Below are positions 11,264-48,000 of a stretch of 64,000 bases of DNA, in pieces (position 1 is the first letter of the stretch; every line of letters starts with the position of its first letter). The stretch spans positions 496,001 through 560,000 of the forward strand of contig NW_003314315.1 of the NCBI RefSeq assembly GCF_000143415.4, in the 5' to 3' direction. The DNA comes from Selaginella moellendorffii (taxonomy: Eukaryota > Plantae > Lycopodiophyta). Position numbers and translations under genes: made by a program. The notes under the pieces were generated by a model. That model worked only from the letters and a program-made list of their open reading frames with translations, searched no databases and had not been told where the DNA came from.

Positions 11264-14200
11264 ATGTTTTTTGGGAGGAACAGCTTCTTATCGTCCCAGG
11301 AGGAACAGCCACGAACAGAGAATGGAGAGCGAATTGGTCACGGGCCCTCTAGATCAAGCACAGGGAGCCGGTCGGATGGATCGGCACATCTAGACGTGTC
11401 CGACCCGTCGTTCGAATCTTTCAGGGAGTTAGTTTCTGGAAGCGATCTCCAGAGCGAAGTTTTCGGAGCTCCAGGATCCATGCAGAGTGAGAATGCTCCG
11501 GCCACAGCTCGCTCTCGGCTTTTCTCGGTGATTTCTTCCAAAGGACCACAAGCTCACGATCGCCATCCTTCTTCTTCCTCGGGTGCTGGTGGTCCTGCTC
11601 TTCCAGCAGCTCGCACTGATGCAAGGAAGGAAAGAGTAGTATATGTCGACAATCCTGGCAGGACTAATGAAAACTTCGAGTTCTCCGGGAACAAGGTCCG
11701 CACCAGCAAATACACGCTTATCTCGTTCCTTCCCAGGAATCTGTTTGAGCAGTTTCATCGGGTTGCCTACATCTACTTTCTCCTGATAGTGATACTCAAC
11801 CAGATTCCTCAGCTCGCGGTTTTTGGGAGGTTGGCTTCGCTGTTTCCTCTTCTCTTCGTGCTGGTTGTGACGGCTATCAAGGACGGTTACGAGGACTGGG
11901 GTCGTCACAGGTCGGACAGGGAAGAAAACAACAGGCTGTCTTGGGTGTTCCAGAATGGCCGGTTTGAGCCAAAGAGGTGGAAGAAAATTGAAGCCGGGGA
12001 AGTAGTGAAGATTTTTCAGGACGAGTCCATTCCGTGCGATATAGTTTTACTGGGAACGAGCGATGCAAACGGAGTAGCTTACGTCCAGACCATCAATCTA
12101 GACGGAGAGACGAACTTAAAGACGAGATATGCACGGCAGGAGAGTGCAAGCAAGCATCCTGGCCTGGCTCCCATCACCGGCAAAGTCGTCTGCGAGCCTC
12201 CAAACAGGAATATCTACGACTTTGTGGCGTACTTGGAGATCGATGACACTCAAGCTCCGCTCGGGCCAAACAACATCATACTCCGCGGGTGTGTGCTCAA
12301 AAACACCGCATGGATCGTGGGAGTTGTGGTTTATGCGGGAAAGGAGACGAAGGCTATGCTCAACAGCTCTGGTGCGCAGTCCAAACGAAGCAGGCTGGAG
12401 CAGCATATGAACAAGGAAACTCTGTGGCTCTCGTTTTTCTTGCTGATCATCTGTATTGCCGGCGGTGTTGGGATGGGAAAATGGGTTCACGATCACGACA
12501 GCGATCTAAACAACTTTCCTTACTACAAGAAGCGTGACACAGCGGACAAGAAGTTCATGTACTATGGACCTTTTGGAGAGGGGGTGTTTGCGTTTCTCAG
12601 CTTCATCATCATGTTCCAGATCATGATCCCGATTTCCTTGTACATCTCCATGGAGCTTGTTCGTCTCGGCCAGAGTTACTTCATGGTGAGAGACGTTGAG
12701 ATGTTTCACGCGCCGTCAAACTCGAGACTCCAGTGCCGTGCTCTAAACATCAACGAAGACTTGGGACAGGTGAAATACATCTTCTCAGATAAAACTGGCA
12801 CACTAACCGAGAATAAGATGGAATTCCACTCAGCCAGCATTGGAGGGGTTGATTATAGCAACGTTCTTGCAGCTAAAATTTCTGGTACTTCTGATTCCTC
12901 GGATGGCATGCAAGTTGAAGGTAACTCTTTTTTCTGTTTAAGGTATTTGTTTCATGTTTATGATCGTTTCTATGTTTGTCAAGTAGGTAGCCATCTCAAG
13001 TCTGGCGTTCGTCTTGATCCCAACTTATTAGAACTTCTTCAAACGGAGGTCACGTCCTCGGAAGCAACTTTTGTTCACCGTTACATGCTGGTGCTTGCGG
13101 CCTGTAATACAGTGGTTCCGACTCGTCACAGTGGATCGCTGCAATATCAGGCTGAATCTCCAGACGAGCAGGCTTTAGTTTTTGCGGCGTCTGCTTACGG
13201 CTATACACTTTTAGACCGAACTACTTCAACGATAGTACTGGATGTTCTTGGAGAGCAGAAAAGGTGACAAGTCTTCGTGCTGAAATGTTTGCTCTAACAC
13301 TACGTGGAACCATTTGCTGCAGCTACAAAATTGTAGGAATTCACGAGTTCGACAGTGTACGCAAGCGCATGTCGATCGTTGTGGAGTGCCCCGATAACAC
13401 GTACAAGCTGCTAGTGAAAGGAGCGGACACCGCAGTGATGGATATCATTGCCAGGCCATCCGAGCAAGTAGAGTCAGGCTCAGGTTCCCTTGCAGACGGT
13501 CATTTGCAAGCAGGGGTGCTGTTTGCAACACAGAGGCACTTGGACTTCTATTCTACGCAAGGATTGCGCACTTTGGTTGTTGCTTTCAAGGATTTGGGGC
13601 AGCCCGAGTTTGAAGAGTGGCACGAAAAGTACAAGAGAGCTAGCACGGCACTGGTGGACAGGGTGAAGTTGCTACGAGAGGCGGCTAGTTTAATAGAAAG
13701 AAATCTGGCCTTGCTGGGAGCTACTGCAATTGAGGACAGGTTGCAAGATGGAGTACCCGAAACAATCTCGTCCCTGCGGAATTCGGGCATCAAAGTTTGG
13801 GTCTTGACAGGAGACAAGCAGGAGACTGCGATTTCTATTGGCTTTTCTTGCGCTCTTCTCACTCCGGACATGGAAAAAGTAATTGTCAACGCTAACACGA
13901 AAGAGCTCTGCGTCGAGAAGCTCAAATCAGCTATCAGAGAGCATGGGATTACTGAGACCAAGGACGTGCACGTTGTAGAGAAGAACTTGAATGCTGTTAA
14001 AGGTGATTCTACCCGCAAGAAACAACTGGCTCTTATTATCGATGGGAACAGTCTCGTGCACGCTCTTTCGCCGGACGTAGAAGAACTCGTAAGTGATATT
14101 CTCTTTTCTAAGTTTGTTTTACCTTTAACATCTTCTCGGTGTGTTTTCTCGCAGCTCTTTGACTTAGCCGTAGCATGCAGAATCGTTATTTGCTGTCGCG

Positions 14201-15416
14201 TCGCGCCGCTGCAAAAAGCCGGGATTGTCTCGTTGATGAAACGAAGAACAAAGGACATGACTCTCGCTATTGGAGATGGTGAGTGATTTTTTTTCTTTTT
14301 GACTTTTGTGGCCTAGAAGTGGTTTTCATTTCCCGAAGTTGTGCTCAGGAGCCAATGATGTCTCCATGATACAGACAGCAGATGTTGGAATTGGATTGAG
14401 TGGCCAGGAAGGTCGGCAAGCAGTCATGGCATCTGACTTTGCATTGGGCCAGTTTCGATTCTTGAAACGGCTTCTCCTCGTCCACGGTCACTGGAACTAC
14501 CAGCGTCTCGCGTATATGGTGCTCTACAACTTTTACAGGAATGCCGTGTTCGTGATGATGCTCTTCTGGTAAGCTCACTCTCGTTTTTCTTCTCACTTTT
14601 CTTCCTTTGTCGTTGACATCTGCCTATAGGTACATTTTGCACACAGCCTTCTCCGCACAGACAGCGCTTTTCGACTGGAACTTGATGTTCTACTCGCTGA
14701 TATACACCTCCGTGCCAACGATCGTCGTCGGGATTCTAGACAAGGACTTGAGTCACAAAACTTTACTCGGACTTCCTCCACTCTACGGTGTCGGACAGAG
14801 AAACGAGAGCTACAACTCGGTGCTCTTCTGGGCGACGATGCTGGACACGCTGTGGCAGAGCTTGGTTCTCTTCTACGTACCGTTTTTTACGTTCCAGGGA
14901 ACGACCATCGATATCTGGGGGATGGGCTGCTTATGGGCCGCAGCAGTGGTGGTGTTGGTCAACTTACACCTCGCTATGGACGTCTTACACTGGACTTGGA
15001 TCACTCACGCGGCGATCTGGGGATCCATCGTCGTCTCCTTTGCGTGTTTCTTCGTGCTGGACGCCTTGACAGACAAAGGATTCATCGCACACTACAGGTA
15101 CTCACTCACTCTTTCGTTTCCCTTGTTTTGATCTCTAGTGGTGTTCTTCTCTCGCAGAGTTATGTTTCATATGGCATCGACTGCGGTGTTTTGGCTAAAC
15201 ATCTTACTCGTAATCGTTGTCGCGTTGCTTCCCCGATTCTGTGCAAAGGTACTGATGCAAAAGTTTTGGCCGTCTGACCTTCACATTGCTAGGGAGCTCG
15301 AGCTAAAAAATCGAGCCGCCATTTCGGAGTTTGTGAAATCGTCCGCCCCTTCTCCCAGAATGGTGGAGCTCGACGATGTTCCTTACTCTGACAAAGAGAG
15401 TAAAGAAGACGAATAG
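11264..15416 (+). CDS. ALA1: P4-type ATPase phospholipid flippase (ALA1-like), multi-exon
   Basis: [24 protein letters not shown] phosphorylation motif, [14 protein letters not shown]|[16 protein letters not shown]. Confidence 0.93.
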
Positions 15417-15538: not shown

Positions 15539-17932
<2,394 letters not shown>

Positions 17933-18060: not shown

Positions 18061-20234
18061 ATGAACGACTACAATGTCGCCGGCATGCCCGCGCGCCCCA
18101 AGGCTGCGCAGAACCGGGCCACTGTCCAGCAGCTCAAACTGGTAAATCTCGTCTCGCCTCTTCTCTTTGATCGGCTTCTCAGCCCTTTTCTTTCAGATCG
18201 GCCAGAGCCATCCCACCGGATTGACTGCGAATCTTTTGAAGCTCTTCGAGCCGCGGCCTCCTCTCGAGTATAAGCCGCCGCCGGAGAAGCGGAATCTTCC
18301 ACCGTATCATGGTAAGAAAGGATTGCTCGTGGAACTGGTTTCTTAAGCTCTACCAGGTATTTCACAATTTGTCCAACACTTTGCGGAGCCTGGTGATCCG
18401 GAGTACAGTCCTCCAATTGTGAAAGCTGAAACTCCGGTATGACAATCGGAATCTCTTCTTTCCTTGTTTCTAAACTTGTGATTTTCAGTCTCAAAGACGA
18501 GCAAGGATCCATAGCGTTCGTCTGGAGAAGGGGGCGGAGAAGGCAACTGAGGATCTGGAAAAATGTGAGTCGTCATGGATTCTCATCTTTCGATGCTCAT
18601 TTTGTTTCTTTCAGATGACCCTCAAACCGATTCCAACATTGAGGGCGATCCATACAAAACACTATTTGTCGCGAGGATTGTAAGTTTTTTTTCTCCTCTA
18701 TTTCCTGGCAAGGCTTCATCTTGTCCTTTGTTCTTTTTTTTTCTTTCCATAGAGTTACGAGACAACGGAACACAAAATTAAAAGGGAGTTTGAGGCCTAT
18801 GGTCCAATAAAAAGGGTAGGTATCCAACTGTGGTGGTCAAGGAGCTTACAACTCCTCGACTGTGGTAAGATATCCTGTTGTGAGTTCACTCTTATCCTTA
18901 CCATTTTCCCGTTTATTTTTCTCATCACATTTTAGCTGCATCGAAAGCACATACTTGTCTAAGCTGCAGATATGTTTCCATGGCTTTCTTCTACTCCACT
19001 GCATGAGTTTTGTTTCTGAAGACTGAGAAGTAAGTGTGTTTTATCAGGTATAAGCCCTTTTCTTCTTTTTTCTTTTACTTCATCGGATTGACAAATATCC
19101 AAGACTTGGAGCGCATGTTTGTTTGTTTGCAGATTAGCAACACACCGAAATTATCTGGCTAGAACAAGAGTCTAGACAGGCAATCTCAAACCTTTTCCTA
19201 GTTTAGAGTCAGCCATGCTAGTTTGCTTTCGCCCCTGGTAAGAGGGTTTTACTGGTAAGCCAACAAAGTTTGAAACTCGTTACTCTCGACGCGTATCTTA
19301 TGTCTTTGAAGCTGGGCACGGCGAGTGAGGCTTAATGCCTTCATGTCTGCCGTGTGGAATAGCGTGCATTTTAATAGTCCGCTTGGTTTGTGCTCTTCAG
19401 AGCGCGAGAATCGTCTTACTTAATACTCTTTTCGTTCTCCAGGTTCGCCTTGTCCATGACAAGGACAGTAATAAGCCTCGCGGGTATGCTTTCATCGAGT
19501 ACTTCCATACACGCGACATGAAAGGTACGTGGTTTCCTTTTGCAAGCTTTGCTGATATGAATTTGTTTGTTCTCCTTGTAGCTGCTTACAAACAAGCCGA
19601 TGGACGGAAAATTGATAACCGGAGAGTTTTAGTTGATGTCGAGCGTGGTCGGACGGTGCCGAACTGGAGACCCCGGAGGCTTGGCGGTGGTCTGGGGTCT
19701 ACTCGTGTCGGTGGCGACGAAGTGAATCAAAAGTACTCCGGCCGGTATGCTCCTATCTCTTTCGTTTGTGCTCTTGAAAATCCATTTTTCTTCCTCAGAG
19801 AACCACAAGTAGGGGGCGCTAGAACTGAGGAGAAGCCCCGGGACGAAAGAAGCCCGGACGAAAGGTTTGTGTTTCCTTTGTGTATACTTTTGAGTTGTCT
19901 AAAAGTTTTTTCTTTTTGCAGAGACCGAGAAAGAGATCGCGATCGAGAGAGAGACCGTGATAGAGATCACAAAGATCGAGACAGGCCGAGAGACCGGGAG
20001 AGGCACCGAGAGAGGGACCGAGACCGGGATAGGGAGCACAGAGAAAGAAGCCGTGGAAGAGAGAGGGACCGAGAGAGAGGAGGCCGCCGAGATCATCACG
20101 AACGAGGGGAGCGCGAGAGAGACCGAGAGCGTGATAGAGATCGAGAGCGCGATAGAGGCTACGAGCGAGAGAGAGACAAAGATCGCGATAGAAGTGAGAA
20201 GTCTCGTTCTAGAGAGCCTATGGAGATGGACTAG
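18061..20234 (+). CDS. U1-70K: U1 small nuclear ribonucleoprotein 70 kDa, multi-exon
   Basis: [26 protein letters not shown]1 [36 protein letters not shown]-rich tail. Confidence 0.96.
18816..19442 (+). promoter_or_regulatory. Long U1-70K intron inside the RRM with clustered 5'-splice-site-like motifs and candidate poison exons
   Basis: 627 nt, against ~45-75 nt for the other introns; GTAAGA 18865, GTGAGT 18880, GTAAGT 19030, GTAAGA 19238, GTAAGC 19255, GTGAGG 19325. Confidence 0.7.
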
Positions 20235-20429: not shown

Positions 20430-23424
20430 ATGATCGTCGCCAGTATCTGGCAGCAGGCAATCTACTACACCGCGAATAATCTCTTGCCGGACGCGGTGTG
20501 TGTGCTGAATCGCAAGCGCCAGCAGTGGCGGAGCACGAATTTCCAGCGATGGAGCGCCAAATCGAGCGGATTGAGAGCAATTCCGGTGACGGACAAGGCT
20601 TCCTGGATAGAGGTACATGAATTTCTTCTTGCGCTAGAATCGGATTCACGATAAAGCTTACAGGAGGAGGAAGCCCAGGAATTCTCCCTCGGGCCACTAT
20701 CGGGCGATCTTGCGGAGATAGAAGCCTTCTGTCGAATCCAGCGCCTTGCCGAGCAGCTCCACAGGACCGTGATGGAATCTCTACGTCGGTTAGAGAGCGC
20801 CGACGAGAACGTTGGTGCTCGAGGTGTGTTTAGTTCGTCCTTGGAGGAGAAAGTGGTGGCTGGGCTGGGGTGCATTGGAGCTACTCTCCATCAGGGAAGG
20901 CTGGACATTCTAGGTGGCTACTCGAACGAGGAGGAAGAAAGGCTTCCTCGCCTCGCTCGGTTTCGATCCAAGCTTAGAGGGTGTTGCTCGTCGCTACGTA
21001 CCTCTCTCCAGTCCTTGTTACCGGCGAAAGGAGACCAGAATCTAGCGGTTTACAGGATCTTACACAGGCTGACCAACGTTTGCCTCGACGCTGGGTTTCC
21101 TCGTCCCGATGGAGCACCGTGCTATGGACACATTCCAAATTTCGCGACTGTCAAGCTCCAGAAAGGTGACGAGAATTTGGTGGAGTTTTGGAGGGGTGGG
21201 AACATCAATGAGGAAGGCCTGGAGTGGTTGCTACAGCGGGAGTTTAAGACGATTGTGGATTTGAGAGATGAAGATCCTCAGAACGAACTGGCCGAAGCAG
21301 CGCTCATGAAAGCCGAAGCGTCTGGGAGAATAAGGCGAGTAAGAATTCCCGTGTCAGTGCAGACAGCGCCGACGATGGAACAAGTCCGCGAGTTTGCGGA
21401 TATCGTCTCGGATGCTGCGAATCGCCCGGTTTTCCTGCAAAGCTATGCCGGCGTGGTGAGAGCATCAGCGATGGTATCCAGGTGGCGGGAGTTTGTGCTT
21501 CGTGGAGGCTTGGATCGTAACTGTACCGAGCCGATGTGCACAGTCGAAGACATATTTCTGGAGGAGACACCTGACAAAGCCTCTGAAAGCTCCAAGGTTG
21601 CAGCCAACATGTTAAGAACAACGAGTCCCTTCGAGGCTCAAATGCCGGGGCCGGATGTCTTCTCTCGCATGTCTATGGCAAGATTTTTCAAGAGGAAACG
21701 TACGCTGCCAGGCTCCGCCCGGCGGCAAAGGAGGACTATCTACTCTCGTTTGGATCCAGACGAGAACGCACAAAATGGACGCTTCAATGCCAAGGTTGAG
21801 GTGCCTAGCAAACCATCTGGAGGTAGCACGAATGGACGAGCTGGTGGCCGAGCAAAGGAAGAAGATGATAACGGCGCTGTCCAAGGTGATATGTGCGCTT
21901 CGAAAACCGGTGTCGTCAGGCTGCAGTCGAGGAAGAAGGCCGAGATGTATCTCGTGAGAACAGATGGTTATAGTTGCACCAGGGAGAGAGTGACGGAGTC
22001 GACGCTGGCATTCACGCATCCCAGTACACAACAGCAGATGCTCATGTGGAAGACTGCACCAAAGACGGTTTTGTTGCTAAAGAAGCTGGGAGAGGAGCTC
22101 ATGGAAGAGGCGAAACAGGTGAGAGCTTGGTATGTCCCTGGTTACGATGACTTAGTTTTCGTGGTTTCTCTGTGACCAGGTGGCTTCGTTTCTGTACAAT
22201 CACGAAGGCATGAATGTTATGGTTGAACCTGACGTACACGATCGATTTGCCAGATTTCCGGGTTTCGGATTCATCCAGACTTTCTACAATCACGATATTG
22301 GGTGATTTCTTCTCAGACGATTTATTATTGTCTGTTTTTACTGTTTTAGTCTGTTTCTTGGCTAAAATCTTTTTGTTTTTGACTTGGCAGCGAGCTCCAT
22401 GAAAGAGTTGATTTTGTGGTGTGCCTCGGTGGAGATGGAGTCATCTTGCATGCATCCAATTTGTTTAGGAGTGCTGTTCCTCCCGTGGTTTCTTTCAATC
22501 TTGGCTCCCTCGGATTCTTAACTGCTCATCCCGTAAGTGTTCGTTCTCGCTGATTGCAAAGGTTCTAACACAAGCCCATGCTTTTAGTTTGAGGACTTCA
22601 AACAAGACTTACGCGCGGTCATACACGGAAATAGAATAGAAGGGGTGTATGTTACTTTGCGTATGCGCTTGAGGTGTGAAATCGTCAGAGATGGACAACC
22701 GGTTTCAGGGAAGGTCTTTGAAGTTCTTAATGAAGTTGTCGTGGACAGAGGATCGAATCCTTATCTCTGCAAGATCGAATGTTACGAAAGGAACCGGCTC
22801 ATCACAAAGGTAAGCTTTTTTTCCGTGGACAATGGAGGTTTTGCGACAACTCTCTTCACAGGTTCAAGCGGACGGGGTGTTAGTAGCCACACCGACTGGT
22901 AGCACAGCTTACTCCACTGCTGCTGGAGGATCAATGGTTAGTAATAGATTGGTTTGAAAGCTTTATCTAACTGGCTTATTCTATGATCTCAGGTTCATCC
23001 GAATGTGCCTTGTATGCTGTTCACGCCCATCTGTCCTCATTCGTTATCGTTTCGTCCTGTGATCCTACCCGACTCTGCTATTCTTGAACTGAAGGTACGC
23101 TAACTTTTCTGTTCACTTCTGGACTTTTGGCGTGGTTCATGCACCCTCGCTTGAGTTTCGTGACGCCCTGAGACTAGCTAGAGCTATGGCACCATTACAG
23201 TTTTTACTTTGCAGGTTCCCAGTGACTCAAGAAGCAATGCTTGGGTCTCGTTTGACGGGAAAAAGAGGCAGCAGCTCACCAAAGGCGATTTGGTGCGAAT
23301 TCATATGGGCAGGAATCCAATGCCTACAGTTAACAAATCCGACCAGACGTCCGATTGGTTTCGGAGCCTGGACAGATGCTTTAACTGGAGTGCTCGTAAA
23401 GAACAGATGGCTCTACTTCACTGA
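20430..23424 (+). CDS. NADK2: NAD kinase 2, chloroplast type, multi-exon
   Basis: [16 protein letters not shown], phosphatase-like FWRGG...KTIVDLR domain, [48 protein letters not shown]. Confidence 0.94.
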
Positions 23425-23533
23425 CTAACAGGTTATTCATTGTAGGTTGCCTAAAGATACATGTCTTTCTTGCATGAAGTTTGTGTTTTCATCATCATAT
23501 TGACGCTTGTTCTAACTGTTACTGCTTTCACAG

Positions 23534-23794
23534 GTTCCAGAAGACGCGAGGAGCTCGGCATTTGTTTCTTTCGACGGGAAGCGAAAGCATCCCCTCAAAA
23601 TGGGTGAATCCATCCGAATCAGCATGAGCAAGCATCCCATGTCGACGGTAAATAAGCGGGATCAAACAGATGATTGGTTTGCCAGTTTGTCTCGATGCTT
23701 TGGCTGGAACCAACGAGCCGAGCAAAAGTCGATCACAGGTGCACACGCCAGGATTTGTTTTTCCATAAACTAGTACTCTTCTTTCGCAGGTTAA
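23534..23794 (+). CDS. Tandemly duplicated, diverged NADK2 terminal exon (candidate alternative last exon)
   Basis: Acceptor TTTCACAG, then open frame VPEDARSSAFVSFDGKRKHPLKMGESIRISMSKHPMSTVNKRDQTDDWFASLSRCFGWNQRAEQKSIT, colinear with exon 23215-23424. Confidence 0.75.
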
Positions 23795-24214
23795 CGACGT
23801 AGCTAAGTTGGCACTGCAGGGACATGAAAAAAAGCGTAAACTCCAAATTTAAGTGTTCGCCACCTTCGCCCCGACAATGATGCCGCATTGGTGAAGTAGA
23901 CCTCCTTGCGGATCAGGCTGAAGAAAATATGCGCACGGGCTTACTCATTAAATTAGTTCAAATGCTGTTAATAAACCACTAATGTTCAACCACTAGAATG
24001 ATCTTTTTTTTATCAGGTATATCCCTATATATTAAGTGGTTGCTTTTATGTTATACATGTACAATTATTACAAAAACATCGATATTGGATAACATGATGA
24101 TCCAACTTGGATATACATGATATATTTTAAGAACTTTTTGGGGTACTGTAAAATAATTATCTACAAATATGCTCTTGAAAATATTATATAAATATAACTT
24201 TTTTTGGAAAATTG

Positions 24215-24330
24215 GTGATGTAATTGTTCAAGCAGAACTCTTGATTGTCATAGGTTTGAATCACAAAGCTATGGAAGCATCTGAAAGAGTTGTCTATAAG
24301 GGCAAGGTTTTCCTTGTTTAAGATTATATA
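24215..24330 (+). pseudogene. Decayed 3' remnant of an MDR reductase paralog
   Basis: TGTTCAAGCAG...TCACAAAGCTAT...ATCTGAAAGAGTTG...GGGCAAGGT...CTTGTTTAAGAT matches 26445-26570 with deletions. Confidence 0.7.
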
Positions 24331-25393
24331 TATCACAAAAATAAACTGACTAAGTCCATCATTGTTATTAAATTATGAATTTCATTATCAATCTAATATT
24401 AATAATTTAGTAAGAAAAGTAAGTGGGTGGTAGGTGGCATATGGCAAAAGTTTCACTATACTCTGTCATAGAATGACTTTCTAGCCCTAGGTTTCATCTC
24501 ATATAGAAGATTTATGTATTATATGAATCATTTTTATATGTTTTTAAGCCCAATTACAACTTTACAAGGCTCTAGCTTTTGCCATTTTGTTTTGAGTAGC
24601 CTGGCCACAATAAATATTTTTTATTATAATGTTTTAATATTTTAAATTTAATAGATACCTTTCACAATTCAAGTTACATAAGAAATTTAATAACACATGA
24701 TTTGAAGTGAAACTCAAATATTTATTCTGGATACGGATATAGCCTTAGATATATTTGATAATGTTTAAAACTATTTTGGGAAACACTTTCAATAAAGGTT
24801 TTTTCAACCACTTAAGCAAATCACAAAACTAAATTTAGCGAAATCAAAGTATAATATAATTTATGTTGTTGTGCATGTTTGCCATTTATAAACTTAATTA
24901 TTTATAAACTGTCAAATCCTCATATTTTAACATTATCTTATATAAGATAAGTCTATACTTTCAATAAAATAATATAAAATTAAATATAAATGTATATAAT
25001 ATAATTTTTCTACTCTTGAAAAATACAAGGAAATAGAAGGATATGAATGAACATAATTTTTCTATTAAAAACAATTGGTAATAATATTATCATGCTATTG
25101 GAATTCATATGTTCACAATATAGCTAGGCTGTATGCAACATGCGTTTCTAATAAAATAATACAAATATTCTTGCAATTTGACTAAATATCTAGTGACAAA
25201 AACGAAATGTATAAACAATACATAAACAATGTCAAAGTAATACTAATTCAGGTTGAACTTTTATGAAAGAAATCTTTCTAATAAAATGGAAGACAGAGTA
25301 TAGCATCTACCACCTACACTGGACGCAAATGGTGTGGTGCAGTCCATGGGTTGTATATATATATAATGTTGCTACTCTTATGTTTTAATCATA

Positions 25394-26563
25394 ATGACAG
25401 GAACAAGAGCACTTTGTGTTCATCCAGAACACCCAATAGTTGACCTGCACAAGTCTCCCAAGCCACAGGGAAATCCTGAAGCTGGAGCTGTGTTGGTTCG
25501 TATCACTGCAAGGCCAATCCACGCTTTGGATCTCTCCGTCATCAGGAAAAAGTTCATCATCCCAGGGAGTCCAACAAATGTAATTCCTGGTTGCGAAGGC
25601 GTGGGGATCGTTGAAGCTGTACAGATATTCTTGGATTTGGTTTTTGAATGTACATGTGCTGATTGAAAATTTTGATGATCAGGTGGGTGAGGGTGTTTCA
25701 AGCGTGAAAAGGGGCGACAGAGTGATCCCGTTGCTGTTCTGGAGCTATTTTATCAGAAAGGGTGCGGGTTCCTGGCAGGATTATGTAGAAGTTCGTGAGG
25801 AGGAAGTAATTCTAGTCCCAGAAGAGATGCACGATGACACTGCAGCACAGTTTGTGAGTAATCCCTGGACTGCCTACTGTATTCTCCAGGATCTGGGTGT
25901 AGCTTCTGAAGACTACATCTTGCAAAACTGTGCTGGATCGGTTGTTGGCAGGCAAGTATATATATTTTGAGATCAGAATTTTGAACTTCTAGTACTGGTG
26001 TTTGGCAGACTGATCATCCAGATTGCAAAACACTGGGGCCTTAAAACGATCAGTCTTGTGAGAAGAGACGAGCTCAAGGAAGAACTGAGTGCAATTGGAG
26101 CTGATGTCGTTATCAATACCACCAAGGAAGGTCAAGAACACTTGTTTGTTGTGATTACGAGTAGCTTTGTAACATCACAAGTTCTGCAGATGTTTCAAAG
26201 GTAGTAAGAGCCGTGACAAACGGGGAGGGAGCTGTTGCAGGAATCGATATGCTAGGAGGATATTCAACGAAATTAGCAGCGGCAAACGTTCGTTCTGGTG
26301 GTAAGCTCGTCACCATCGGTACCTTGGAATCAACAGACCTCGTCATCTCCTTCAATGACATGTGGAGGAACATTCATCACAATATTTGGGGCCTGATTAA
26401 CTTCCAAGGAGATAAACACAAAGTGGCAGAAGAGGTGATGCAGCTGTTCAAGCAGGGAATTATAGAAACACCTGGTTGCCGTAGGTTTGAATTTGAAGAG
26501 TATCACAAAGCTATTGAGGAATCTGAGAGAGTTGCCAGTGGGGGCAAGGTCTTACTTGTTTAA
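25394..26563 (+). CDS. Medium-chain dehydrogenase/reductase, enoyl-thioester reductase / quinone oxidoreductase-like (zinc-independent), 4 exons
   Basis: VRITARPIHALD, PGCEGVGIVEA|VGEGV..GDRVIP, NPWTAY, AGSVVG NAD(P)H-binding motif, C-terminal GKVLLV*; intron 2 has a GC donor. Confidence 0.88.
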
Positions 26564-31749: not shown

Positions 31750-32099
31750 AAGCTTCCAGGAGAAACGATGGCTTTTTTTTCTTTCCATTTCGCGGCAAGA
31801 AACAATTTTTCACGCATTCGTTGACAGAGAACCTGTGTGACGAGATTGTGGTACAAGAAAATGATGTGCTTGCAACTCTGGACCTGCCGATTTTGAACTC
31901 CTTTTTGGAAATCAAAACAATTTCCATTCCTATTGTCACCTTGTATGTTTTTCCATTGTTGTTTAGGAAAACATCCTCTTTTTAGAATTCTTGCTTTCAT
32001 CAAAATAGCACTCTGCAACGTTTTCTGAATGTGAAAAGAGAAACGTGTGGCAAAAAAAAATATTTGGATATATATATAGCATATATATATCCAAAAGTG

Positions 32100-32535
32100 T
32101 AGTGGCACCCCTAGTATGCAAAATTTATTAGGATCGGCTGGGCTGGAGCGAACTCTAACACGACTGTACAAAAATATATATATTTTTGGATATATATCCA
32201 AAATATATATTCAAAAGCCACCGGAACAAACTGTTCTAAGCACATATAGCTCAACAATCACATTTCTCGCGTGGTTAAAGAAATAACCCTTTTACAGTTA
32301 CCCTCCATCGGATGGCTGCAATTGGCTGGATCTGGCGGCCCAGAAAGTTCGGCAACTCCTCCTTATTGTGATAGATATACAAATTCAAAAGTAAGGCTTT
32401 AGGTGAGCAAAGATGGATGTAACAAATTTAACGTGGGAGATTGGACTAATATATGCAAAGATTGAAGTATAGTGGCACCCCTAGTATGCAAAATTTATTA
32501 GGATCGGCTGGGCTGGAGCGAACTCTAACACGACT
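32100..32535. repeat. ~66-bp direct repeat bracketing a Helitron 5'-end fragment
   Basis: TAGTGGCACCCCTAGTATGCAAAATTTATTAGGATCGGCTGGGCTGGAGCGAACTCTAACACGACT at ~32100 and ~32470. Confidence 0.85.
32265..32375 (-). mobile_element. Helitron 5'-terminal fragment
   Basis: Strong match to 44957-45064; minus-strand A|TCTATCACAATAAGGAG terminus. Confidence 0.7.
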
Positions 32536-33269
32536 AGACCCTGGGTTTACCTGAGAAGAGAACACAAGCAAACTGTTCTAAGCACGTTGAAGAAACGAGA
32601 AATGAAGTTGGCTCCGAGCTCGAGAAGTTGAGACATCACATTGTTCATCTGAAAAGCGGCATGACTTTGCAAAGAATTCCAATAATCCCATTAGGGCCCA
32701 ATGGAATGTTCCTGGGGGGGCAAATCTAAGAATGCAGGTGAGATCTGACCCTCCTGAGCATCAAATCACACAAAACAAGCACCGAAGCGCACAGAATCAC
32801 AGCATCAATGTAGCAATCCCGCAAAACAATGCAAGAGATTGCAAGGACCCTGTCCAGAAATCCATACCCTGGGCAGATCGATCGCGATCTCCAATCCAAA
32901 ACCCTGCCGCCCGGAGCACCAAACCATCGCCCTTGCTCTGGACTGTGTGGAGGTCCAAATAGCTAAACTTTTGTCTGTAGAGCACCGTTTGGAACCAGCT
33001 GGCAAGCCAATCAAATAGACTTCCTTTTCCCCCTGTCCCTATATCTCTCTTTTGCTCGCTTGATCCAAGCCATTTTGAAAATTTGGTGCCAAGAACATCC
33101 GAGTAGTTATTGACAAATCATGTTAGTAGTAAAGACGAGGTTTGTTATGGGTTTTTGTGAGAATCTTTTATAGCACATAAGGATATTCTGAAAGGAGCAT
33201 ATTCTGCTCTATTGTGAGAATATTCTAGAATTCTGAGAAACTGAAATCAATCTGTATTTTTAATGCTTT

Positions 33270-33972
33270 ATGAATAAAATAATCAACTTTACCTAAACTT
33301 ATTCAAGTATTAGAATCTTTGAATATTTTAGGTCAAAAAGTAACTTTTATAATTTAATTTAGCAGTATTTACAAATATAATAAGAAAATTATATTTTGTA
33401 CAAATGGTCTATCTAAATATCACTAAAATATATAGAACCCAATAGCAGGTGATGGTATATCAAATGTGGGTTGACTTAGTTTTATGAATGTGTAGGACTA
33501 TGACCAAAACTTCAATTGTTAATACAAAAAATTTAAATAACTTTAACAATCAGAGTATATGTTATATTTTTATATGTAGCCTTAGTTACTTATAATCTAA
33601 CTCATTATAATAAAAAAAAACTAAGATAATGTATGCAGTATTTGATTAGACAGTAATATTTTAAAATCTTTTTACTAACTACAAATATAGTTTATTAGTG
33701 CATAATACTATGGAATATAATATTTAAATTTATAGTTTCTATAACATATATATTTACAAATAATTATATTCATTAAGTATATTCATATTTCCAAATAATA
33801 ATTTTTATCTAATATTTTTATTAATGAATATTTATTCTTACTTATGCCTAGGAGTATATTTTGTTCTAAATTCAAGCTACATTTTGTATTCATCTAGCAT
33901 TTTTTCAGCATAATTCCCTCAATTCTTGATACTATTTCAATTTAATTTTTAATATATTAAAAAATCAAAACA
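33270..33972 (+). mobile_element. AT-rich Helitron 3'-internal fragment (inverted copy of ~42585-43540), terminal hairpin missing
   Basis: For example TATTCTTACTTATGCCTAGGA at ~33833 is the reverse complement of the sequence at ~42765; similarity stops at AATCAAAACAG. Confidence 0.7.
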
Positions 33973-34641
33973 GCTGGCCAGGATACTAAGCGAGTGACTA
34001 TATGAAACAGTGAGTACATGATGATGGTGTCGGCCTGTGCCCACCAAAAAAGTCAAGAATGTAAACTATGAACAGGGGAACTGAATCATATTAAGAATAA
34101 AAAATTTCATAGCGCTGCCGTCGTCTTCGTGCTCGTTGTCGAGTCTGGAGGCATGACACGTGGCCGATGACATCAGTTGGCCGAGAACTAGATACGAGAG
34201 GGGTCCCCTGGTGACTATATGAAACAGTGACTAGATGATGATGGTGTGGGCCCGCGCACACCGAAAGAGTCCTAGGCTTTGACGGTACTTTTCTTTTGTC
34301 TGTTCAACATATACTTCAGGTATATGTAGAACAAACAAAACAAACAGTAAAATGCCCCAACATCCAATGGGCTACTCTGAAATCGTCCCTGATAAGGACA
34401 TATCACGTCATGAGAAATCAAAGTCATGATAACGACATATAAAGTCAACATTAGTACTTCTATTACTTTACTTGCCCAGTCATATATTGATGTCATCGGC
34501 CACGTGTCATGCCACGTCGCTTTTCGAGATCGCAGGATTTTGGACAGTTCTTCGCGGCTGTGGCAGCTTGGCGCTAGCACAGATTTCGGCATCAAGCACT
34601 CTTGCTGGCGGCTTTCGCTTGTAAATCCGCGCTGCTTTGCA

Positions 34642-41399: not shown

Positions 41400-42338
41400 C
41401 AGGTTCTCTGTCGACGAATGCGTGCAAAATTGTTTCTTGCCGCGAGATAGAAAGGCAAAAAAAGAAAAAAAAACCATCGTTTCTCCTGGAAGCTTTCACA
41501 TAAATAGATCGAGCGAGTCGGGGTTCCAATGCCAATGCCAAGCTGGGTGGCCAAGCCATCCCACAAAGGCAAGAGCGTCAAAACGACCAACACTAGCGCC
41601 ACAGCATAGACGATTTGCCTCCAAGTGCCAACATCAGTAACGTCGTTGAGGCAGGCCTTCTTGGACGATCGACCAACAAGGAGAAACAGTAAGAACTCTC
41701 TACGAGTCCGAACAGAAAAAGGTCTTGGAAGATAACACTGGGAACTTGCGCAAGTGTCCCTTGAGAGGCTCTTTTTGCCGAGGGCAAAAGGCCGACTCCC
41801 ACCATTGCAACCGAGAGAGCGAGTCCGGGGTTACAATGCCAACGCCGGCTAGTGCCACAGCATAGACCAGTAACGTCGTTGAGGCAGGCCTTCTCGGAAG
41901 ATCGACCAACAAGGAGAAATGGAGAACACACAGTAAGAACTCTCTACGAGTCCCAACAGAAAAAAGGCCTTGGAAGACAACACTGGGAACTTCTGGGAAT
42001 TTGCACAAGTGTCCCTTCAGGTGCTCCTTTTGCCAAGGACAAAAGGCCGACTCCCACCATTGCAACCGAGAGAAATTCTCCAGCCAATGGGCCTGCCATG
42101 GAAACGTCAAATTTTGCTTTCCGGTCCGCTTCTCCAAGCAATGGAGTTTTCATTTTGTTTGTGGTGGTAACTTGTGTGATAGCAGCGAAGCTACCAAGAG
42201 TCACTTACACACCTAAAGGTGCTGCAGTTAATCTATGTCCAATTTCCTGGAACAAAAAGATTACAAATATAGCAAGGAGACTTACATGAAACAGTTGCAC
42301 GTAAAAAACTCTGGCACTAGAAGATTTAATCCGTTGCT
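41400..42338 (-). pseudogene. Scrambled EGY1 fragments (inverted copy, exon pieces repeated)
   Basis: Reverse complement of EGY1 3' exons; the KACLNDVT and VAMVGVGLL segments each occur twice. Confidence 0.85.
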
Positions 42339-42546
42339 TAATAGTATTCTTACTTATTATTCCAATTGATCAAATAAAAGTTTATAATTATAAACATGTT
42401 TATAATTTATATACACAAAATTAAATTTGTTATTAAATGGTAGAATAAAAAAGAATGTACTAAAAAGTGTTTAAGAAAATTTATAAATTATAAATATAAA
42501 TTAATCTAAATGAATAATAACCACTAGATAGTAAAATATCCTAAAA

Positions 42547-45064
42547 CTAGCACTTGCCCAGCATATGCTGCCTAGTTAGCAAAATACTGTTTTGATTATT
42601 ATAATTTTTTATATTAAAAACTAAAATTGGAATAGTATCAAATAAATAAATATTATATTCCACTGGAAAGAAGAATTGAGGGAATTATTCACAGCAAATG
42701 TTAGGTGAACACAAAAATCAGTTCTTGTAAACTTGATAATATAAATATTTAGAACAAAATATATTCCTAGGCATAAGTAAGAATAAATATTCATTAATAA
42801 AAATATTAGATACAAATTATTATTTAAAATATGAATATATTTAGAAAAATACCAGACCATAAAAAATATACATGAAATTGCTATTAATAATAATATGTTA
42901 TATATAAATTACATTTTTACATGGGATAAACTTATATTAAGATATTATCAAACAAAAGAGAATAATTACTAAGAATAATTATTACTCTTTTTTATTAGCA
43001 AGACATTACTTAATTATGCAGTTTACTTAGACCCAAATCCAGTCAAGAAAATAATTACTAATAAAATCTTTTGTAAATATATATGCTATAGAAACTGTAA
43101 TTCCATATTATTACGTATTAAGAAAACTATATTTACAGTTAGGAAAAAGATTTTAAAATATTACTGCTTAATCAAATACTGCATACATTATTTTAGTTTT
43201 TCTGATAATGAGTTAGATTGTAAATAGTTAAGGTTACATATAAAAATATAATATGTACTCTTATTGTTGAAATTGTTTATTTTTTTTGTATTAACACTTG
43301 AAGTTTTGATCATGATCTTACACATTAATAAAACTATGTCAACCCACATTTAATATACCATCACTTAATGTTAGGTTTCATATGTTATAATGATATTTAA
43401 ACAGGCTATTTGTATAAAATATAGTTTTCATACTATATTTACAAATACAGTTAAATTAAATTATAAAAGTTAATTTTGACTTTAAATATTCAAAGCTTAT
43501 AATAATTTATAAAATAGAATAAATTTAGGATTAAAAACAAAGCTGTTCACTTAAAAATAAATATTCACTCTCTTAGAATAGCCTGTTAAACAGAATTAAA
43601 ATTTCTAGCAGTTTTGGATTTTGATCTGGTGATACCATCAAAAGACATACATAATTTATCACCTCATGGTTACAATTTGTCATTAGTTGTCAATGGCACT
43701 ATGCATTGCCATTTGGATAACCTAAAATCTCACCATAGCAAAAGACAAAACCTCTCAGCTCCTTGTGTCCTAATCTCTTGCACCCATGAATTCACCTGGT
43801 AAAGAAAGTAAAAAACTTACCATCCTGATGACCATGTGGATCTGCCACAATTAGAAGTATGTAAGCTGCTCCTTTGATGCCACTGGCTGAGAAACTACAT
43901 GCCAAGCAATTCTTCTGTTAAGTTGAGAGCATAAGAAAGTGAAAACTTTCAATGGGATTCTCAGGAGCAAAAACACCACAAAGTATCGCAAAAATCAAAT
44001 CAGGAAAAGAACAAAAACAGCAAGAAAAGACACCAAGAGTTGATCTTCGGTGCCTTGTGCCTCTACGCCCAACACTCACCTCTGGCCAGTGTCAAGTGCC
44101 CGGCACCTCTGTCAGCGCCTCTGCCTTGCACACCCTAGCACTCTAATGCAGTCTCTGCTCAGCCAGCCCTCTCTCAGCGCCCTCTGCTTGCCCAGCCCTC
44201 TCTTCTGCCAGCGCCTTAGTGCCTTGCTGAGCACCCTAGTGCATTCCTAGCTTGGTGCCTCCTCTCAGCGCCTCTGCCAGTGCCTTAGGCCGCTCTCTCA
44301 CACCAGCGCCTCACTCAGCACTCTACATTCTAGTCGAGCGACGCATCCGGATGCTGCAACACCTCGCTCCACCGCCAGGAGGAATGCCAGAGGCCGACAT
44401 GGCAATCTCGTGCCAGGAGTTTTGCTTGAGATCCAGCACCATGAGCTTGTCACTGACCAAGTAGGAGTAAAGCACGCCCTTGGTGCACAGTGATCCAAGC
44501 TCCATACACGGCCACGCCGTAATCTCCCTCCAAAGAAGCATCTAGTGAGCCATTTCCCTTGCGGCACGTAGGGGGTCGCGCCTCCCAGCTCGCCAAAGCT
44601 ACTAATGTGATTGATTGCCTTCTGGAATGCCTTGGTGTTAAGTTTGATCCCATTGCTCACTCCCCCAAAATCAGCATTTTCTCCATTGCTGTTGCATCCT
44701 TGGATAGCCGGCCAGCAATCACCCAGCAGGAACACATTTGTCATGTCGCTTTCTTCGCTCGATGGTCAACACCTTGCATGCGCCACGTGTCACAGTGCAT
44801 TCCTCTCTCGCCCCACACGGCTTGGCCGCCTCCCATTGGCCGGGAGCAAACACACTTTGCATGTGCCACGCGTCGCCGGGCCTTCCTCTCCCGCCCCACG
44901 CGGCTTGGCCGCCTCCCATTGGCCGGGAGCAAACATCAGCGCGATTATTCTCAAACACGTGGTTAAAGAAATAACCCCTTTACAGTTACCCCCCCATCGG
45001 ACGGCTGCGATTGGCTGGATCCGGCGGCCCACAAAGTTCGGCGTTTGCTCCTTATAGTAGTAGA
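42547..45064 (-). mobile_element. Non-autonomous Helitron carrying captured gene fragments
   Basis: 5' TCTACTACTATAAG at 45064; 3' hairpin CAGCATATGCTG then CTAG|T at 42547; subterminal GGCTTGGCCGCCTCCCATTGGCCGGGAGCAAACA repeats shared with the autonomous element. Confidence 0.8.
44545..44675 (-). pseudogene. Captured GH28 polygalacturonase N-terminal fragment
   Basis: DFGGVSNGIKLNTKAFQKAI...GGATPYVPQGKWLT resembles the DFGAxGDG...NTxAF...VPxGxWLTG motif. Confidence 0.7.
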
Positions 45065-48000
45065 TTAGCAATTGCCCAGCAAATGCTGGGTGGTTGGCAA
45101 ATTTGATGCCATTTGAAGAGGTTTTCTAAGCTTAGCTAAGTTTGCTGTTTGATCAACTCCACAATTGAAAGACATTCTCATAACCAAATGTGTTATAAGC
45201 ATTATATAAGCTAGATTAGATAACTGTTGAGTTGCATTGCTCCATTTTGAACACAAAAAGCCCAAAGAATACTTCCAAGTCCATCTTTGGTGCAAGTGTT
45301 GGTACTTGCTCCTCAGCCTGCTAGAGAGGTTCCTGGGATGAGCGAGAAACCATTATATTGCAATGAGAGCTGCACTCAAAAAGCAATAGGATGAAAACTG
45401 TACCTCTGCCATTAGCAACTAAATAGCACATGCCATAACCAAAATGGGACAGCACCCAAGGCACACTTGTCAATGCCAGCTTTGTTGTGGTGTGCATTTG
45501 AAACTCACAACTTCATGGTTGGATATAGAATTGTGCCATGTTTTTGTCAGTCTACTTAAGAATTTCAGCATAGACTGTATTCACAGTGTAAAAGTGTTGA
45601 TCATGTGGTATAAGATTGCCTTGAAGGGGGGTTGCAAGCACTTGAACACGAAGTTGTTCAGGTGATCTACACCTTGACAGAGCAACATAAAGTTGACCAT
45701 GTGTGAAAACAGGTTGGGGGAGGTAAATGCCAACACGGTCGAAAGTTTGGCCTTGGGCTTTAGAAATAGTTAAGCAATAACCCAGACGAACTGGGAATTG
45801 TCTTCGAGACATCTTGAAAGGGATTTCAACATCAGAAGGTGTAAGGGTAATACGTGGAATAAAAACTCGCGATCCCTTGAATTGTCCCGTGATAATTTCA
45901 CAATCTAAAACGTTTTGAGATGCTTGCTTGAGAATGAGGCGAGTGCCATTGCATAAACCAATTTGTGGAGATATGTTCCTAAGAAGAATCAAAATCACAT
46001 TTTGTTTTAGAATTAATTTGTGTGGTGGTAGTCCCGATGGGGTGATTGAATTTAAGAATTCAATTGGGAACTCTTCCAGGTGATCTGAGTCAACTGTGTC
46101 AATGCTCAAATAAACATATGGATCACCTGGTAGTCTTTCAACAATGTCATTATTTATTCTGAATGTGTCGTCATTGAGTGGGGTGAGAATAACCTTTGAT
46201 GCAGCTGTATAAGTATTTGTAATATCATCGGTATTTGGGAAAACAAAGTTTACAACAGATGTAGTGATAGATAATGCATGTGGTATTTTGATAATATCTG
46301 GTGGGAGACATGGCAACTGTAAACTACTATCACCGTTGCCAAGTTTGAGAAGCCATTCAGAAAAACAAAGATTACTTGAACGCATATTCTTTGTTAATGT
46401 TAGTGTTGTAAAGAGTGACCATAGTCTATTCATTTTAACTGAGCTTGAAATAATAGAAGTTCTATGGCCATGGGGAACAACAGGAAGGGTTTGACGAAAG
46501 TCACCACTTGTAATCACTATAACGCCTCCAAATGGTTTAGAATTACATTTGAGATGTTTTAAACATTTATCAACCACAGAGAAAGCATGTGAATGAACCA
46601 TACTAATTTCATCCCATATGAGAACATTTGCTTGTTTAATGGTTTTTCCAGCATCACTATTAATTGTTAAAGCAGAGACAGAAGTTTCATTTAAAGGAAT
46701 AGGAAGTTTAAAAGTCATATGTGCCGTTTGACCATATTTTAGCAAAATGCTTGCAATCCCAGTCCATGCCATACTGATTACTTTTATTTTTTTTAATTGT
46801 AATGCTGTAATGATGGTATTAAGTAGAAAAGTTTTTCCAGTACCACCAGGTCCATCAATAAAGAAACATTGATGTTGGTTAGTATCAATGGCATTTATAA
46901 TGAGTTCAAAAATATAACGTTGTTCATAACTGAATTGATTTATGTTTGCATTTATTTGGTCTTGTGATGGGTCAGGGATCTCTGTATTAAGCATGTGTTT
47001 GGTAATGGGAGTAAGAGTTGGGAGTGGTAAACCAAAATCATAATTAGATTTATTGTGTAGTTGGAATTTTGAATTGATATCGACTAAAGCAATGTCAAAA
47101 TAGTTTATGTCATTTCTAGCATAATCCTCAGACATATCAATTTTGAATTGATCCCATAATAGATTTGGATCTTTTGGTGAACAATACAAACAAATAAAAA
47201 CAAATAACAGTCTTAATTGGGATGGCATTTTAAAAGTAGAAGCTTCTTGCATGCAGCGTTGCCATTCTGAATCATCTGCTAAAAGTCCCATTGCCATAGC
47301 TGCTTGTTTAAAAGAGGAGAAAGTAACACCTTCGACAGTACATATATCCTCAAATGATATAGCACCTTTTTTATAGAGTAATATAAGCCGTAAGTGGTAT
47401 AACTCACTATTAGAAGGAGATATGGAATACATTCTTGGTATGAGTTTAGCTTTTCGCTGGCGTAATTGCCATCTATGAGAGGATTTGTTATATGTGTAAT
47501 ATAATGGAATTTGAGCATATGTATATTGCCTTGCATTAGTATCTTGCATGTTTAAATTGAACCATTGTGTAAGCATTGTTCCATTTTGAGTGGCTCTTTC
47601 TAGTGCTTCTTGTTCATGACCTGGTCTGAAATAAACGTTTTGAAAATTGGGTAAATGAACTGGAAGGCATATAATAGTTAGTGATTTATCATGCATATGA
47701 AACTTAAATATACGCCACATGGCTTCAGGAGCAGAAATATATCGAGCATCGACAAAACTTGAGATTTCGTCCCAATTTAAAGTCCCTCGTTCTTCAGATG
47801 CAGTTAGGAATTCTAATGTTGCACAGTCATAACCTTTGTATACATATTGAAATAAATATTTAATACTTTTAATAGAAGCACAGATCTCTACATTGATGTG
47901 TGCTTGATATTTCTTACAAAGGTATTTATTATAAGGAACAACCCATCTGTTGTCAATAGTACAACCATTTTTTATGAAAGTGCACCCGTTATTGGGACGG

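Follow-up and report, generated by a model that had tools for sequence, protein, structure and literature searches.

The gene NADK2 of the lycophyte Selaginella moellendorffii, which lies within a window of 64,000 nucleotides on contig NW_003314315.1 (the whole stretch of DNA analyzed here, in whose positions all coordinates below are given), contains two long-diverged tandem versions of the exon that encodes the C-terminal tail of the enzyme. We refer to the upstream version as exon A and to the downstream version as exon B. Taken as a whole, the observations are best explained by an old duplication of the tail exon after which both copies remained coding, with A now a cassette exon that carries its own stop codon, B a constitutive exon, and both tails most likely belonging to active kinases; we regard this explanation as very probable. 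Photosynthetic electron flow depends on the chloroplast NADP pool, which NADK2, a core redox enzyme, produces.

The identity of the host gene, proposed as NADK2 in an initial annotation made from the DNA letters, is secure. Its exons match the S. moellendorffii RefSeq protein 'probable NAD kinase 2, chloroplastic', in which 'chloroplastic' is RefSeq naming, at 99.8-100% identity, and the peptide of exon 1 matches PF22741 (PTP-NADK, a DSP-PTPase-like domain fused to NAD kinase) with an E value of 4.6e-47 and 159.9 bits. The NAD_kinase domain PF01513 is detected by Pfam on exon 3 (E 7e-10), the precomputed annotation of the RefSeq isoform X2 protein P0298 lists PF01513 together with PF20143, and the translations of open reading frames (ORFs) in the window contain CLGGDG, LNEVVVD, and TPTGSTAYS, the GGDG, NE/D, and glycine-rich motifs of the family. 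Across its kinase part the protein is 77-83% identical to the NADK2 of a fern, a moss, and Arabidopsis. In a published survey the plant chloroplast NAD kinase NADK2 forms subfamily II (PMC4072752).

A direct comparison of the two exons confirms that they are diverged, intact copies of one another in the same phase, as had been claimed initially. BLASTP aligns their products with 38 identities in 67 residues (57%), 75% positives, and no gaps (E 1e-29 as a single comparison). Both exons follow their own CAG acceptor, both are in phase 0, and both begin with GTTCC; the A frame (23215-23424) ends RKEQMALLH before its stop, and the B frame, opening at 23534, reads VPEDARSSAF...RAEQKSITGAHARICFSIN to its stop. 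Over the 64 shared codons the DNA is 59% identical, and this identity is unevenly distributed, at 72%, 70%, and 34% for the first, second, and third codon positions, respectively. The Nei-Gojobori dN is 0.35 with a dS that is not computable, and maximum likelihood (ML) gives a dN of 0.32 and a dS of about 5, so that the dN/dS check suggested at the outset yielded a consistent dN (0.32-0.35) against a saturated dS. Neither the introns preceding A and B nor the sequences following each copy resemble one another more than shuffled sequences do (p 0.19-0.95); apparent matches between the introns in a MAFFT alignment were likewise not significant against shuffles and were rejected. Exons A and B are an old, constrained coding pair for which chance is ruled out, and their duplication is ancient enough to have wiped out all similarity at silent sites and in introns. 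A tandem duplication of around 319 bp would have given rise to the second tail-coding exon of NADK2, acceptor and donor included, with both copies staying in coding use thereafter. An origin of A from an NADK1 paralogue was also considered and rejected; the string FNWSAR was found only in S. moellendorffii NADK2 among 445 fetched proteins.

How the two exons are used can be read from Logan contigs of four runs, from four studies and under three organism labels, that we placed on positions 22100-24200. Every gap in these contigs is a GT..AG intron, which argues that the runs are RNA. Exon 6 is joined to A in all four runs and to B in three, from different studies, with 439 nt skipped in the latter case; both junctions that the initial annotation had named for checking, from the donor at 23095 to 23215 and to 23534, are thus present. 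The A to B joint (102 nt skipped) and the joint from B to 23790 (51 nt skipped) each occur in all four runs, and one contig of 2969 nt holds exon 6, A, B, and the last exon together. No joint from A to the last exon, or from exon 6 to the last exon, is listed in the contigs of the four runs. Because the joints comprise 6 to A, 6 to B, A to B, and B to last exon, and neither of the two that would bypass B, A is a cassette exon and B a constitutive one.

The consequences for the protein follow from the position of the stop codons. When A is included, translation stops at the TGA at 23422-24, 7 nt ahead of the A/B junction; skipping of A places B in frame behind exon 6, and translation then continues past the 51-nt intron to the TAA at 23792-94, giving a protein that ends ...KSITG. 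The two copies had originally been described as alternative last exons, and this description has to be given up, since a further exon (23790-~23995) follows both. Two endings had been offered for exon B, and it is the small intron (23739-23789) with the TAA beyond it that appears in all four runs, read-through to the TAG at 23773 being absent from the contigs. Nor are the exons strictly exclusive of one another in mRNA: A-containing transcripts also carry B, as 3' untranslated region (3'UTR), and the exclusion of one tail by the other comes about in translation, which the stop in A brings to an end. The proposal of switchable C-terminal isoforms therefore stands with respect to its products, seen both in the exon 6 joints and in the RefSeq isoforms X1 and X2, but with a different switch, namely the inclusion or skipping of A in place of a choice of terminal exon. 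Depending on this event, the mRNA yields one or the other of two paralogous tails of 69 residues.

In two runs the depth of A-specific unitigs is about half that of the flanking common exons (39 versus 61-71, and 118 versus 231), and in a third it is 33, compared with 34 upstream and 79 downstream; contig depth cannot rank the parts of one gene, according to a warning of the tool itself, and the only reading that we take from these values is that both splice forms are not rare. Variants within the contigs match the second haplotype of the species (23370 G>A, 23818 A>T, and a block from 23935 on), and both alleles are therefore expressed. A full-length contig of the run labeled X2 uses an alternative donor of exon 2 at 22329/22330, 28 nt downstream of the usual one (joint 22329>22391 versus 22300>22390), which shifts the NADK2 frame and is likely to be an unproductive splice variant. 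An Rfam scan of positions 22800-24200 returned no match, and the inverted repeats that might serve as candidate competing RNA structures are weak, at 11-24 nt and 74-91% complementarity.

The two products observed here are exactly those held by RefSeq for S. moellendorffii NADK2. Isoform X2 (XP_002982512.2 and XP_002981035.2; P0394 and P0298) ends with the exon A tail, and isoform X1 (XP_024543306.1 and XP_024541729.1; P0393 and P0396) ends ...RCFGWNQRAEQKSITG, which is exon B. Clustering at 90% brings together two isoforms for each of two haplotype scaffolds. These entries are automatic models, and they are silent on the paralogy of the tandem tails, on the age of the pair, and on the arrangement in which the cassette A is followed by B as 3'UTR. 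The A-form and B-form proteins are both 836 residues long and differ at 31 of their last 69 positions, and the window represents the 836-residue haplotype.

The second haplotype, GL377612.1, differs from the window by about 3% within the gene and carries A and B in the same order. Between the haplotypes exon A shows a single, synonymous difference (CTG>CTA) and exon B none, so that non-synonymous differences are absent from both; the two introns adjoining B differ at 1 and 3.9 sites per 100 nt and the last exon at 12 per 100 nt, all of these being small counts. The haplotypes are 97% identical through the gene and become almost unalignable from about 23935, at the end of the 3'UTR and beyond, where 25 differences fall in the last exon and a further 49 within the 105 nt that follow it; each version is represented among the RNA contigs.

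Conservation was judged against 224 distinct NADK tail segments from green plants, in which conservation of at least 90% is seen at 24 columns. Of these, exon A retains 22, the exceptions being S32G and N59S, and exon B retains 21, with W10F, R18K, and P37S as its exceptions. Purifying selection on both exons, suspected from the start, is supported by the codon-position pattern, the saturated dS, the kept columns, and the lack of non-synonymous differences between haplotypes. Neutral drift for long enough to randomize third positions and introns would not be expected to leave such a pattern.

The functional weight of this segment is best appreciated from human NADK. Cryo-electron microscopy of the human enzyme places W427 in a buried position between two C-domains, shows N428 hydrogen-bonded to a second monomer, and has R430 pointing at the active site; the substitutions W427G and R430A leave the enzyme almost inactive, the tail residue Q433 is conserved, and the tail as a whole is packed where two C-domains meet and reaches into the active site of the neighboring subunit (PMC11759006). 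The segment encoded by A or B aligns with human residues ~372 to 436, comprising the final strands of the C-domain and, beyond them, the C-terminal helix (413-424) and the C-tail. Both exons have W58, R61, and Q64 at the positions of human W427, R430, and Q433, F49 and L52 are likewise kept in both Selaginella tails, and the motif DWF.SL..C..W..R..Q is common to human NADK and the two exons. The equivalent of N428 is a serine in A and an asparagine in B, and A and B differ at 30 further positions. In human NADK this segment exists in a single version and control of the enzyme is attributed to phosphorylation and the N-terminal tail, whereas Selaginella NADK2 carries the whole segment in two spliced versions.

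Because the essential tryptophan, arginine, and glutamine are retained in both tails, both isoforms are most likely active kinases, which are expected to differ in activity, in subunit contacts, or in regulation, with no direction of the difference implied. Substrate preference, oligomerization, and regulation were the candidate differences suggested initially, and the segment in question does include the helix and tail on which human NADK depends. We infer that both proteins accumulate and that they differ functionally.

To collect relatives of the pair, the A+B alignment was run as a profile against 1.84 billion representatives, and local comparison was added. Exon A is nearest to the canonical streptophyte tail, GDS...SL[VI]RCLNWNERL[ED]QKAL, with 76% identity to Spirogloea, 73% to Riccia, and 70% to angiosperms. 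Exon B is nearest to the NADK2 tails of mosses, at 69-74% (Ceratodon, Logan moss transcripts, and the moss-type metagenome loci L006-L009), and shares with Ceratodon purpureus KAG0557420.1 and L006-L009 the pattern GES..RI.MS ... SLSRCFGWNQR.EQ.SI; the residues that B has in common with mosses are E25, S53, F56, G57, Q60, and the final S-I. The identity of A to B, at 57%, is lower than that of either exon to these outgroups. An ML tree from 67 columns, the first 67 residues of each exon, recovers (A,(B,mosses)), with support of 99/92 for B plus mosses and 87/74 for the node that joins A; in an approximately unbiased (AU) test on this very short alignment, A and B as sisters are not rejected (p 0.21).

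The motif F56/G57 is also found in chlorophyte tails (SLERCFGWN[DE]R); it has the look of another stable arrangement of the helix end, which makes convergence of the B and moss tails plausible. Chlorophyte NADK tails more widely (P0150/P0274, P0152-P0166, P0199, and P0212) read SL[ED]RCF[GRAKT]W[NST].R, and streptophyte algae, liverworts, ferns, and seed plants have SL[VI]RCLNWNER at the helix end. At that leucine position a phenylalanine stands in mosses and in both Selaginella exons, an alternative that recurs at the helix end.

Duplicated tail exons had been proposed as something to look for in the NADK2 genes of other lycophytes, ferns, and bryophytes. In the bryophytes covered here each gene has one last exon: no second tail exon or relic of one was found in Marchantia (L004), Ceratodon (L003), the moss-type loci L006-L009, or any of 80 metagenome loci. 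Marchantia NADK2 has a single canonical last exon, and moss NADK2 a single last exon of B type, in a gene that is intronless (Ceratodon, L003) or has introns (L006-L009). Searching for NADK2 of other Selaginella species or other lycophytes with residues 548-837 of P0396 as the query found none, with nothing closer than 83%. The Ceratodon purpureus gene on CM026432.1 (L003 4001-7027) is a single ORF of 3027 nt, and L006-L009 have retained introns where Selaginella has its introns 4-6, a comparison which suggests that wholesale intron loss or retroposition of NADK2 may have occurred within mosses.

It is possible, though on balance doubtful, that the A/B pair predates the split between mosses and vascular plants, the ancestral land-plant NADK2 having had both a canonical tail exon and one of the 'CFGWNQR' type. 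In this model Selaginella would have kept both exons as a splicing switch, mosses the B type only, and liverworts, ferns, and seed plants the canonical type only, and the intronless Ceratodon gene could descend from a processed mRNA in which A had been skipped. If true, this would make the pair a splicing module of a core redox enzyme that is more than 450 million years old and has been sorted differently among land-plant lineages.

A separate matter is the fate of the A-containing transcript. Its stop precedes the joint of B with the last exon by 212 nt of mRNA, and its 3'UTR of ~418 nt contains two exon junctions, compared with the intron-free 3'UTR of ~201 nt in the A-skipped mRNA. In plants, nonsense-mediated decay (NMD) is triggered by introns in the 3'UTR and by long 3'UTRs (PMC1693880, PMC3711448). 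By analogy, the A form would be exposed to NMD, and the choice of isoform may also set mRNA stability. From this arises the view that A is mainly a regulatory, poison-like cassette, the inclusion of which turns the transcript into an NMD target, with the switch tuning the amount of the B-type enzyme. The architecture speaks for it, in that exon A does place a stop more than 50 nt upstream of a junction and before a long 3'UTR, and the B form is free of these features. A poison cassette is also expected to have no conserved coding function, however, and 22 of the 24 conserved residues, the tryptophan, arginine, and glutamine among them, persist in exon A, which is also the copy nearest, at 70-76% identity, to the canonical plant tails; a mere stop cassette would need none of this. 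A-containing contigs are moreover present in all four runs, at a k-mer depth similar to that of the rest of the gene, which is a rough guide. We therefore consider it improbable that A is mainly a poison cassette, while noting that this role and that of encoding a second enzyme are compatible with each other.

The converse idea, that B is the dispensable copy, a decaying relic in a 3'UTR whose joint to exon 6 and whose RefSeq isoform X1 reflect splicing noise, draws on the location of B downstream of the stop of A, on its loss of three near-invariant residues (W10F, R18K, and P37S), and on the fact that the B peptide alone is not recognized by Pfam. Such a relic is hard to reconcile with a frame that has stayed intact and free of indels while synonymous sites became saturated and introns unalignable, with the 21 of 24 conserved residues that remain, or with the complete identity of B between haplotypes; furthermore, the joint from exon 6 to B occurs in three of the four runs, from different studies, at a depth like that of the joint to A, and the A-skipped mRNA is the form without NMD features. 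Decay of B is in our judgment very improbable. Still less credence can be given to an artefact of assembly in which haplotypes or paralogues were stitched in tandem. S. moellendorffii assemblies do hold two haplotypes, here about 3% apart, but both scaffolds carry A followed by B, the DNA of the two exons is only 59% identical and thus diverged far beyond haplotypes, and the A to B junction is spanned with a canonical intron in all four runs, with one contig running from exon 6 through A and B to the last exon. These spliced contigs already refute the artefact, and we treat it as practically negligible.

Our preferred reading, an old pair of coding tails used alternately, has several points to answer. 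Each copy has lost near-invariant residues (S32G and N59S in A; W10F, R18K, and P37S in B), the exon pair is known from one lycophyte species, and the two tail isoforms are known at the level of RNA contigs and annotation. The RNA data are assembled contigs from runs whose RNA nature was guessed by the tool, they give no reliable ratio, tissue, or condition, and one run (X2) yielded the A-containing form alone. Finally, the NMD-type features of the A form mean that its protein output might be low.

Alternatively spliced, tandem-duplicated homologous exons are a known kind; they have been described mainly in animals, and the majority there are both ancient and expressed (PMC9741552, PMC8373072, PMC4465641). 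The Selaginella pair belongs with them in that its members have a common origin, share phase and a length of 69 residues, and are both used in mature transcripts; like the animal pairs, they are adjacent, swap one structural segment, and are old and constrained on both sides. The pair departs from the animal kind in that its members are not mutually exclusive in mRNA, the upstream copy having its own stop and the downstream copy doubling as 3'UTR, and in that it sits at the C-terminus of a plant metabolic enzyme. Our literature search found no description of tandem duplicated exon substitution in a plant NADK. A survey of the NADK family that includes S. moellendorffii considers only the longest variant of each gene and does not mention the duplication (PMC4072752), and NAD kinase is not mentioned in a survey of S. 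moellendorffii splicing (PMC5310277). It seems, then, that the isoforms are known at the level of annotation and that their origin by exon duplication and their architecture are undescribed.

Two long-diverged tails spliced onto the same enzyme amount to a natural experiment on how the tail tunes the activity or assembly of NAD kinase, and for homologous-exon substitution, which has been documented mostly in animals, the pair provides a clear case from a plant. The unusual mode, with an own-stop cassette and a paralogous exon serving as 3'UTR, ties the choice of isoform to possible control by NMD. This gain is tempered by the presence of the isoforms in RefSeq already, by the known kind to which the phenomenon belongs, and by a functional difference that is only inferred. 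The gene model is set out in Table 1.

Table 1. Gene model of NADK2 in the window, with the evidence for each exon and intron.
Feature	Position	Strand	Evidence
NADK2 exon 0, with start codon (MIVASIWQQ...), 61 codons	20430..20612	+	tblastn of RefSeq proteins P0393/P0394; GT donor at 20613
NADK2 exon 1, 485 codons, N-terminal region with PTP-NADK domain	20664..22118	+	PF22741; CAG/GTGAGA donor 22118/22119; 99.8% identity to P0298
NADK2 exon 2	22180..22301	+	RNA joints, splice sites
NADK2 exon 3, GGDG motif	22391..22532	+	PF01513; RNA joints
NADK2 exon 4	22588..22809	+	RNA joints; 100% identity to P0298
NADK2 exon 5, TPTGSTAY motif	22862..22936	+	RNA joints
NADK2 exon 6, ends ...ILELK, phase 0, GT donor at 23095 spliced to A or B	22993..23094	+	GT..AG joints 23092>23213 and 23092>23532
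Exon A, cassette, 69 codons, TGA 23422-23424 and 7 nt of 3'UTR; C-terminus of RefSeq X2	23215..23431	+	translation, RNA joints, splice sites, RefSeq
A-B intron, 102 nt, GT..AG, removed in A-containing mRNAs	23432..23533	+	joint 23427>23530 (cut +4), 4/4 runs
Exon B, diverged tandem copy of A; translated only if A is skipped; gives ...RCFGWNQRAEQKSIT+G (RefSeq X1)	23534..23738	+	translation, BLASTP, RNA joints, RefSeq
51-nt intron after exon B, GT..AG, phase 1	23739..23789	+	joint 23735>23787 (cut +3), 4/4 runs
True last exon: last two bases of the final Gly codon, TAA 23792-23794 (B-form stop), 3'UTR, AATAAA 23970-23975	23790..~23995	+	contigs end 23984-23999

The surroundings of NADK2 could be described from ORF translations and from the annotation of the other haplotype. 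Upstream lie a flippase-like P-type ATPase (13264-15416), a methionyl-tRNA synthetase-like gene (~15539-17900), and an RS/RD-rich, U1-70K-like RNA-binding protein (19335-20234); downstream are a zinc-type oxidoreductase-like gene (25394-26563) and, on the minus strand, a radial-spoke protein with PF04712 (26734-27396). Blocks of 27-34% G+C (24000-26000, 32000-34000, 42000-44000, and 46000-50000) alternate with genes of about 50% G+C; the blocks are AT-rich intergenic or repeat stretches, and the genes are compact, with introns of 51-120 nt.

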